From the IMG/VR virus record IMGVR_UViG_3300047472_000309, positions 1 to 64,000 of that record: 64,000 nt of DNA; one strand, written 5' to 3'. The notes beneath the pieces were generated by a model. That model searched no databases and was not told the origin of the DNA. It worked only from the letters and a program-made list of their open reading frames with translations. Numbering within the stretch: position 1 is the first letter of the stretch; each line of letters opens with the position of its first letter. The position numbers and the translations under genes were made by a program. Below are positions 5,943-6,720 of this stretch, in pieces.

Positions 5943-6418
5943 CGATCGCGTTTTCTGTTCTTGGGCAAGGCGGGCCGCTGGGAGCTTTTCCCAGGGTTAT
6001 TCACCTTGAATGCGGGCATAGCGTGTACAACTTCTGCCAAGCCCAATGGCTCGACGTCACTTCTCATGGGATGCACCATCCCAGTAAGTTTTTCCTGGAT
6101 CTTGCGCTCACTCATGCCGCGACTCTTAAGCTCAACGCGCAATTCTTCGGGTGAAGCAATCACAATCAGGGGCAACTTGGCAGCACGAATCGCCTCAATA
6201 ACGTGGGGTGCATGTAAGGCGTGCTCCACGTAAAGAATCGGCAACTCCCGGAAAGCACCTTTATGCTGGGACGTGAGCTCCATGACAGGGGTGCCATCCG
6301 GTAGCGCCACGGTGAGGGGTTCGATGCTCTGGTCGATCGGCTCCAAATAAGCCTTGGTCGCTTCGCGCAGCTGCTCGATGACCCGCGCGCATTCTTCATC
6401 CCGGTTCATTCCCACCAC
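5933..6418 (-). CDS. Hypothetical protein ending ...RKRDRWN
   Basis: 161-aa ORF overlapping both neighbours; GGGAGG RBS. Confidence 0.7.
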   Translation of the reverse strand: MVGMNRDEECARVIEQLREATKAYLEPIDQSIEPLTVALPDGTPVMELTSQHKGAFRELPILYVEHALHAPHVIEAIRAAKLPLIVIASPEELRVELKSRGMSERKIQEKLTGMVHPMRSDVEPLGLAEVVHAMPAFKVNNPGKSSQRPALPKNRKRDRWN

Positions 6419-6720
6419 CTCCCTTTCTTGTAGCGTGAGCCCGACTTCGGCCCATGCTTACGTTTCTTCTTACCCCGGCGTTCATCGCGTGAACGATAGT
6501 CTTCCATCGGACCCTGATTCATGTTGGTGTATGTCTTGGCTCCGGTGCTCGCGTTCCCGTACAACGCCACGCTACTGGTATCGTTAACTGCTGCCTGAAG
6601 GGCGATCTGAACCGCAGCGCTGCGTAAGAGCGAACGGGCGTAGCCTGTACGGCCACCCGGCAAGATATGGCCGATGGTGCCCACATTCACGTGCGGCTTG
6701 GTGCGCTCAAACTTCGCCAT
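6406..6720 (-). CDS. Small protein with an EF-Tu-identical N-terminal peptide
   Basis: ATG 6720 with GGAGGAG RBS. Starts [18 protein letters not shown], then unrelated sequence; basic tail ending GRWWE. Confidence 0.8.
   Translation of the reverse strand: [104 protein letters not shown]

Follow-up and report, generated by a model that had tools for sequence, protein, structure and literature searches.

The N-terminus of elongation factor Tu (EF-Tu) is among the most conserved of bacterial peptides, and plants use its first residues, known as elf18, as an immune elicitor. EF-Tu is also a recurrent focus of the conflict between phages and their hosts, as exemplified by Q-beta replicase, T4 Gol/Lit, Avs7 and type IV Thoeris; these systems use or cut the EF-Tu of the host, at switch I or at domains II-III, and a copy of the N-terminal arm encoded by the phage itself plays a part in none of them. 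Among viral proteins made from pieces of translation factors, vaccinia K3L, a truncated mimic of eIF2-alpha, acts as a pseudosubstrate that blocks PKR. Here we analysed a stretch of 64,000 nucleotides (nt) from a nucleus-forming jumbo phage (positions 1 to 64,000 of IMG/VR virus record IMGVR_UViG_3300047472_000309; hereafter the window), in which a small gene close to that of the phage-nucleus shell protein chimallin encodes a protein of 104 amino acids (aa), referred to below as the mini-protein, that begins with a copy of the EF-Tu arm and ends in a polybasic tail. The gene very probably combines a captured fragment of the EF-Tu gene (tuf), a peptide under selection and a modular build, and the sequence makes it likely that its product is a molecular mimic. 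Literature searches turned up no paper describing EF-Tu N-terminal proteins encoded by phages.

By analogy, the mini-protein would stand conceptually closest to viral truncated translation-factor mimics such as poxvirus K3L. Both are small viral proteins that originate from the N-terminal part of a translation factor and whose resemblance to it is kept by selection; K3L, however, is a whole folded S1 domain with modest identity to its model and a known partner, whereas in the mini-protein some 16-35 residues were copied, with 100% identity over 16 of them, and the chain looks disordered in structure prediction. With EF-Tu the mini-protein has all 16 residues of the arm and the first beta-strand (beta-1), that is, of the elf18 region, in common, but it lacks the P-loop, the G2-G4 motifs and domains II and III, and an unrelated polybasic tail follows the arm. 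As a pathogen-associated molecular pattern and ligand of EFR, elf18 requires the N-acetylated first 18 residues including the xKxKF start, whereas the mini-protein starts with MAKF, and Ac-SKE, with which elf18 opens, is absent or altered in the phage copies. The phage protein family phrog_27465 is likewise small, starts with the EF-Tu N-terminus and has a basic end (E 1.3e-7 over residues 3-34); its 59-position profile is matched at positions 5-35 only, the tuf-derived part, which is compatible with common origin or independent capture. A member of this family, ORF27 of Aaphi23, differs from the mini-protein in its intact GHVDHGKT, its unrelated tail and its location in the nin region of a temperate Pasteurellaceae phage. 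Arm-bearing proteins of Vibrio phages are built like the mini-protein, from an arm, a spacer and a polybasic C-terminus, with tails that differ. Finally, phiKZ gp014 and Churi gp335 are early jumbo-phage proteins that bind host ribosomes (PMC11849849); they and the mini-protein would all be early products of nucleus-forming phages that are plausibly directed at translation, and no sequence relation between them was found by tblastn of the mini-protein against 50,697 phage records (E<=10).

The EF-Tu arm: identity, selection and origin

Residues 3-18 of the mini-protein are identical to K5-H20 of EF-Tu at 16 of 16 aligned positions (Met1 numbering, E. coli EF-Tu), as a preliminary description of the window, made from the letters alone, had recognised for the gene at 6406-6720. 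After the arm the mini-protein continues with ILPGGRTG, and the identity breaks directly behind GH, where GHILPGGRT stands for the GHVDHGKT of EF-Tu. A profile of the mini-protein family compared with all PDB chains matched EF-Tu only, with E-values from 2.9e-8 to 6e-7 for the best-ranked chains and an alignment that stops at about residue 25, and hhalign of the family against an EF-Tu fragment gave an E-value of 8e-15 over 25 columns. The NCBIfam EF-Tu models placed mini-protein residues 2-38 on EF-Tu positions 4-39 (E 3.7e-6), with a score of 26 bits against cut-offs of 449-522. Judged by these comparisons, the match of the arm to EF-Tu is far above chance. Searching the ESM Atlas with the mini-protein returned just short EF-Tu fragment clusters (scores ~0.7), and Pfam, PHROGs and NCBIfam searches with the mini-protein and its neighbours yielded nothing besides the EF-Tu arm and phrog_27465.

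The hallmarks of translational GTPases are missing. The mini-protein has no match to Pfam PF00009 (GTP_EFTU) at E<=1; no family member retains the GK[ST] of the G1 P-loop GxxxxGK[ST], the nearest being GHVSNGRT in the relative P0021; and the 104-aa sequence contains neither G2 (RGITI), G3 (DxxG) nor G4 (NKxD), nor the beta-barrel domains II and III, AlphaFold2 (AF2) giving two helices and no barrel. The change from GHVDHGKT to GHILPGGRT implies that the mini-protein cannot be a GTPase, and the earlier statement to this effect, based on the end of the identity within the P-loop, is thereby borne out. In sequence terms the mini-protein is EF-Tu-derived, yet lacks every defining feature of a translational GTPase.

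Eighteen relatives were collected: the orthologue in Burkholderia phage FLC9, 14 from a search of 5.8 billion proteins and 3 from an exhaustive representative search. The FLC9 orthologue, gp386 (60.7% identity, arm intact), was the sole full-length match when the mini-protein was compared by tblastn with 50,697 phage records (E<=10). By sequence, there is good support for a genuine gene that is conserved among FLC9-like, nucleus-forming jumbo phages and is probably expressed early. The EF-Tu peptide is overwhelmingly retained among the orthologues, the exceptions being P0022 and P0027, which are discussed below.

Codon alignments of 10 orthologues gave, for arm residues 3-18, a proportion of synonymous differences (pS) of 0.75, which is saturated, and a proportion of non-synonymous differences (pN) of 0.03; the corresponding values were 0.70 and 0.32 for the middle part (residues 19-66) and 0.67 and 0.15 for the tail (residues 67-104), and the ratio of non-synonymous to synonymous substitution rates (dN/dS) of the whole gene was ~0.115. 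K3, F4, R6, K8, P9, H10, G14 and T15 are invariant in 18/18 sequences, and the invariant arm positions of the phage copies are positions that are invariant in EF-Tu. The residues ahead of K3 vary among orthologues (MA, MP, MVKG or MAKH). Saturated synonymous sites combined with an invariant peptide place the constraint on the peptide and not on the mRNA. The comparison of synonymous divergence had been proposed in the preliminary description, and its outcome, diverged DNA under an invariant peptide, points to selection on the protein; the notion of a captured tuf translation-initiation region, also raised there, finds no support, given the saturation of the arm and the internal position of the peptide in gp90 of phage C-ZP2022 (see below). 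The exact 48-nt arm sequence occurs in 0/185,579 species genomes, and a search of IMG/VR with the strict back-translated arm pattern found nothing but the mini-protein family and host tuf at provirus ends. The DNA is not near-identical to host tuf, and the arm is, on codon evidence, an old tuf capture with selection on the peptide and not a recent neutral copy.

Two relatives bear on the extent of the capture: P0021 retains GHVSNGRTSL, which keeps the P-loop spacing with K replaced by R, and P0023 retains AIAKVL in place of the AITKVL of EF-Tu. Homology to EF-Tu probably extends beyond the arm; hhalign backs it over the first 25 columns only. It is well supported by sequence that an ancestral phage captured the 5'-terminal part of host tuf, comprising the N-terminal arm, beta-1 and the P-loop, and the captured segment possibly included helix alpha-1 as well. 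The first P-loop Gly has become Ala in 4 family members, a change that fits loss of the nucleotide-binding constraint.

A trace of tuf is still discernible in the DNA. Metagenome contigs placed on the region produce a ~10-fold depth spike in the 6613-6713 bin in all four runs, and short bacterial tuf contigs from the same metagenomes align to 6664-6718 only, with 85-94% identity over ~50 nt; among the tuf contig matches listed, the best pieces have 3-7 mismatches over 35-52 nt. Beyond the tract these contigs code for VDHGKTT on one side and for MAKGK, together with the tuf leader, on the other. Since they leave the phage sequence on both sides, the DNA-level homology tract measures ~50 nt. Such a tuf-like tract draws bacterial reads and is therefore a coverage trap, with possible chimeric assemblies.

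Polybasic tails and arm-bearing proteins of other phages

The tail of the mini-protein, a second module that the preliminary description did not mention, has its own set of residues that are invariant across the 18 sequences (N68, G70, P71, M72, R78, R81, R82, K86, S95, Y97, K98, W102, W103 and E104). Four genes of the cluster end in basic RWW-type tails, namely those at 8011-8265 and 7225-7470, the mini-protein gene and the gene at 5933-6409, the tails of which terminate in REWWNTPKKERRRKRK, SRQWWNHR, KKGRWWE and NRKRDRWN, respectively. FLC9 and the orthologous loci L006, L008 and L009 have counterparts of three of these tails, and that of 7225-7470 was seen again in L006 only. A relaxed scan for RWW-type tails elsewhere in the 64 kb found no credible gene, the other hits being short or alternative-frame open reading frames (ORFs), and a tail-only search of 5.8 billion proteins found family members only. 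In the locus L031 the syntenic position is occupied by P0027 (4001-4531), a 176-aa ORF in which a zinc-ribbon head is fused to a mini-type tail. The related tails of the neighbours and this fusion suggest that a common anchoring tail is attached to heads of several kinds, of which the EF-Tu arm would be one; the tail of the cluster may thus be a shared anchoring or localisation signal. A PDB sequence search with two tail-sharing neighbours gave no significant match, indicating that they are not obvious host mimics. AF2 prediction of the mini-protein from 15 sequences reached a mean local confidence (pLDDT) of 53 and a global template-modelling score (pTM) of 0.18, with two helices, including one at residues 26-45 of low confidence, and no usable fold; on this model the mini-protein appears largely disordered on its own.

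A tblastn search of GenBank phages, with follow-up reading of the loci (L002:1489-1668, L003:1495-1674, L004:1489-1890, L005:1489-1869, L015:1492-2211 and L016:952-1773), identified five other phage groups in each of which an EF-Tu arm is joined to a polybasic C-terminus of its own. These are the 59-aa ORF27 of Aaphi23 and S1249 (phrog_27465, in the nin region and with GHVDHGKT intact); the 59-aa VPDG_00052 of Vibrio phage henriette 12B8, with a basic end; NVP1244A_125 and p0029 (133 and 126 aa) of the Ackermannviridae Vibrio phages 1.244.A and 207E48.1, with the arm conserved between both; the 239-aa P0089 of Vibrio phage 150E35-1, which retains the Walker A motif and ERGITIS; and the 273-aa gp90 of the Vibrio jumbo phages C-ZP2022 and vB_pir03, in which the arm is internal. 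The proteins of 1.244.A and 207E48.1 are 57% identical as wholes but agree in all of their first 21 residues, where the codons differ by 5 synonymous changes; in this pair, too, the arm is under purifying selection. In C-ZP2022 gp90 the arm lies ~190 residues into the protein, and arm and tail are appended to an N-terminal domain that is weakly nucleotidyltransferase (NTase)-like (DUF6036, E 0.07) and occurs without arm and tail in Yersinia phage phiR1-37; this is the look that would be expected of a targeting module. When the chimallivirus and Vibrio families were compared by hhalign, homology was found in 24 arm columns only and the tails were not detectably homologous. Taken at the level of sequence, the families look like repeated captures or a very old divergence, converging on a plan of arm and basic tail. 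Short arm-bearing proteins without a P-loop that emerged from a search of 1.84 billion proteins resemble frameshifted or truncated tuf calls, not families. In addition, a gene of Vibrio phages 2.058.O and 3.058.O that bears the annotation 'elongation factor Tu GTP binding domain protein' matches the arm with 62% identity and could represent a fuller phage-borne EF-Tu-like GTPase.

Candidate functions of the arm

Our main reading, to which we assign a probability of roughly 0.3, is that the mini-protein serves as a trans-acting adaptor, its arm docking on EF-Tu or aminoacyl-tRNA (aa-tRNA) and its tail providing an anchor; it would not be an enzyme. In the EF-Tu.GTP.aa-tRNA complex, the N-terminus of EF-Tu lies on the d2-d2x hairpin of domain 2, beside the 3' end of the aa-tRNA, and a contact-dependent inhibition toxin docks at that same site on open EF-Tu (PMC5737660); in molecular dynamics simulations the N-terminal region of EF-Tu is stabilised by aa-tRNA (PMC3045518). 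The phage arm would engage the site of the native arm in trans, on domain 2 of open EF-Tu or at the acceptor end of aa-tRNA, while the polybasic tail would hold RNA (tRNA or rRNA) or another anionic surface, with the outcome that part of the elongation machinery would be tethered or modulated for the phage soon after infection. We count in support of this mechanism the recurrence of arm and tail in the five other phage groups and the position of the gene in the conserved part of its cluster, not in the variable slot. In its widest and more doubtful form, the proposal would be that phages of no fewer than four to six lineages built small EF-Tu-arm adaptors, each time by joining captured tuf 5' ends to polybasic tails, to dock on EF-Tu, aa-tRNA or a reader of the N-terminus, and that the tail-sharing set of the chimalliviruses reprogrammes the elongation machinery.

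Several observations weigh against the adaptor. We infer the docking of the arm in its entirety, and the expression of the mini-protein is a prediction from sequence. EF-Tu is very abundant and carries its own arm in cis, so that an arm acting in trans needs extra affinity or reaches a subset only. Polybasic tails could equally well bind DNA, membranes or acidic proteins, and an EF-Tu-like pattern of conservation is expected for a decoy, too. P0022, present on 11 contigs, retains KFQRTKPHASVGT without IGH and the helix, and in L031 the syntenic gene P0027 has no arm, with no arm-like DNA anywhere in the 8.5-kb locus; the arm is thus dispensable in some backgrounds. On the available sequences, the arm is strongly constrained where present but not indispensable, and the tail is the more universal module.

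Nearly as likely as an adaptor is a pseudosubstrate or decoy, in which the arm would bait a low-abundance host reader of the EF-Tu N-terminus (a defence protease, a toxin or a modifying enzyme) and the tail might add the affinity that lets the mini-protein outcompete abundant EF-Tu. A host-type arm perfectly retained under purifying selection fits this possibility, as does the fact that anti-phage immunity is known to converge on EF-Tu (through Lit, the caspase of type IV Thoeris and Avs7); the arm is, moreover, patchy across unrelated phages, as is common for anti-defence genes, it was lost in some lineages, and a variable accessory slot adjoins the mini-protein gene. However, no known system reads the copied segment, and the sites at which EF-Tu is known to be targeted lie beyond residues 1-20: Lit cuts at G59-I60, the Thoeris type IV caspase cleaves behind R45 and R59, and Avs7 binds domains II-III. 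The EF-Tu Lys5 methyltransferase EftM binds EF-Tu without the peptide equally well, and the isolated peptide is not methylated (10.1101/773556). Furthermore, the gene occupies one position in 12/12 fetched loci carrying it, an uncommon pattern for a gene that counters a defence of sporadic occurrence, and the native EF-Tu arm is present in enormous excess. The molecular mimic proposed in the preliminary description fits the data, but the kinds of partner suggested there (a defence protein, a toxin or a modifying enzyme) gain no support from Lit, type IV Thoeris, Avs7 or EftM.

Explanations that dispense with EF-Tu mimicry, or with the peptide altogether, fare less well. The segment is unlikely to be a recognition tag, an unfolded piece of EF-Tu that would offer a host chaperone or AAA+ protease a handle, for instance to time the turnover of the phage protein or to fold it. 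In native EF-Tu beta-1 lies buried, and a free copy would be exposed as in nascent EF-Tu, the mini-protein is predicted to be disordered and the segment consists of a hydrophobic core between basic residues, all of which suits such a tag, but a generic chaperone or degron motif would need neither 8-13 invariant, EF-Tu-identical residues nor re-invention from tuf in several phage groups. We consider it improbable that the start of tuf was kept as an expression cassette, for efficient initiation or early elongation, and drives the downstream gene through the ATGA overlap, the peptide itself having no role: few genes are expressed as highly as tuf, and a strong Shine-Dalgarno sequence and tight coupling to both neighbours are in place, yet the synonymous sites are saturated under an invariant peptide, the residues before K3 vary, the peptide is internal in C-ZP2022 gp90 and the conserved C-terminal tail implies that the protein itself matters. 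Least credible is a relic whose uniformity stems from gene conversion, with short patches of host tuf copied in again and again during infection and the peptide free of selection. The similarity of the tuf contigs of the same samples to the arm is compatible with it, and so are the arm DNA distances between orthologues, which do not track the tail distances (Mantel test, r 0.19, p 0.12, a test that is weak and of low power at saturation). Against this stand the failure of any orthologue to regain the adjacent VDHGKT, the shortness of the tract and the mismatches in even the best listed tuf pieces, the TTT, AAT and CAT codons in many copies, and the conservation of ORF, frame and tail throughout, reflected in the low dN/dS. 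The remaining probability falls to something outside these explanations. Plant elf18/EFR signalling as the selective reason was ruled out by the Vibrio and Aggregatibacter phages with the same plan and by the unconserved residues ahead of the Lys-Phe pair, and antisense regulation of host tuf was ruled out by the constraint on amino acids, not nucleotides.

The invariance of the arm amid a drifting protein, together with the same build in unrelated phages, is a pointer to an important interaction of the arm. Its partner would reveal either a new viral handling of the elongation machinery, as a bacterial counterpart of K3L mimicry, or a host system that reads the arm. If adaptors did arise repeatedly, the universally conserved elf18 segment would engage in an unrecognised, targetable interaction, and the tail-sharing early proteins of chimalliviruses would move the elongation machinery of the host to the surroundings of the infection compartment or reprogramme it there. 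FLC9 and Burkholderia glumae provide a cultivable phage-host pair.

Gene cluster and phage context

The features of the region are compiled in the table.

Features of the mini-protein gene and its surroundings in the window
Feature	Positions	Strand	Remarks
Mini-protein gene, 104 aa	6406..6720	minus	ATG 6720-6718, TGA 6408-6406
Shine-Dalgarno sequence GGAGGA	6729..6734	minus	8 nt ahead of the mini-protein ATG, read from the sequence
EF-Tu arm and beta-1 copy, residues 3-18	6667..6714	minus	identical to EF-Tu
Decayed P-loop relic and predicted helix, residues 19-45	6586..6666	minus	probable remnant of the P-loop and helix alpha-1 of EF-Tu
Conserved polybasic C-terminal tail, residues 67-104	6409..6522	minus	ends in RWWE
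Downstream gene, 158 aa	5933..6409	minus	conserved basic tail RPALPKNRKRDRWN; in every orthologous locus fetched
Upstream gene, ~96 aa	6707..6997	minus	CxxC...CxxC, zinc-ribbon-like; slot variable among relatives
Small cluster gene	7225..7470	minus	related tail ending NQRSRQWWNHR
Small cluster gene	8011..8265	minus	related tail ending SRQREWWNTPKKERRRKRK
Chimallin, phage-nucleus shell protein	3132..5042	minus	PF25677, E 9.3e-55; two genes downstream of the mini-protein gene
RNA-polymerase-like subunit	1497-2966		
Divergent family B DNA polymerase	10197-12326		

The ribosome-binding site of its own and the overlaps with both neighbours that had been noted for the mini-protein gene are readily seen: the upstream gene overlaps it by 14 nt, with its stop codon (6709-6707) inside the mini-protein ORF, and the mini-protein stop and the downstream start share an ATGA at 6409. 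A scan of 4900-8600, which contains the cluster, found no terminator-like sites on the minus strand. In 12/12 fetched orthologous loci the mini-protein gene has one fixed position, two genes upstream of chimallin. In the fetched loci of sufficient extent (short contigs give part of the order), the DNA polymerase is followed by small genes, a variable slot and the mini-protein gene, after which come the genes of proteins of 140-276 aa and 155-214 aa, then chimallin and the RNA polymerase subunit, and the chimallin synteny is the same in L006-L012 and L031-L033.

The mini-protein gene thus belongs to the conserved part of the cluster and adjoins the variable slot. Its occupant is a zinc-ribbon-like protein in the window and in L010 and L012, a transmembrane-like protein of ~90 aa in FLC9, L006, L008, L009 and L011, and a GNAT acetyltransferase in L013 (1070-1534) and L014 (1070-1549), where the overlap with the mini-protein gene amounts to 34-49 nt. 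The slot GNAT matched generic models only, with weak RimI/AAC matches, all below cut-off. The GNAT and NTase-like classes include toxins that act on tRNA acceptor ends; the matches obtained here are generic or weak, and a connection of this kind is no more than a lead. The protein encoded downstream of the mini-protein is variable in its N-terminal half, with insertions of 100-120 aa in some orthologues (265-276 aa in L008 and L013), and strongly conserved in its C-terminal half (RGMSEREIQEKLTG...MRSD...RPALPKNRKRDRWN); the 158-aa version in the window had no family or PDB match, and its AF2 model, with a pLDDT of 55.7, was too poor to be compared with known folds.

The window phage is a chimallin-encoding, nucleus-forming jumbo phage, and its closest GenBank relative is the 321-kb Burkholderia phage FLC9. 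The window DNA is contained in rhizosphere and soil metagenomes, and an identical mini-protein is encoded on IMG/VR contigs, one of them of 310,654 bp. Within the otherwise minus-strand cluster, a gene of 378 aa with no Pfam match lies on the opposite strand (8485-9621, plus) and has counterparts of 377-379 aa at the corresponding place in the longer, wide-flank orthologous loci.

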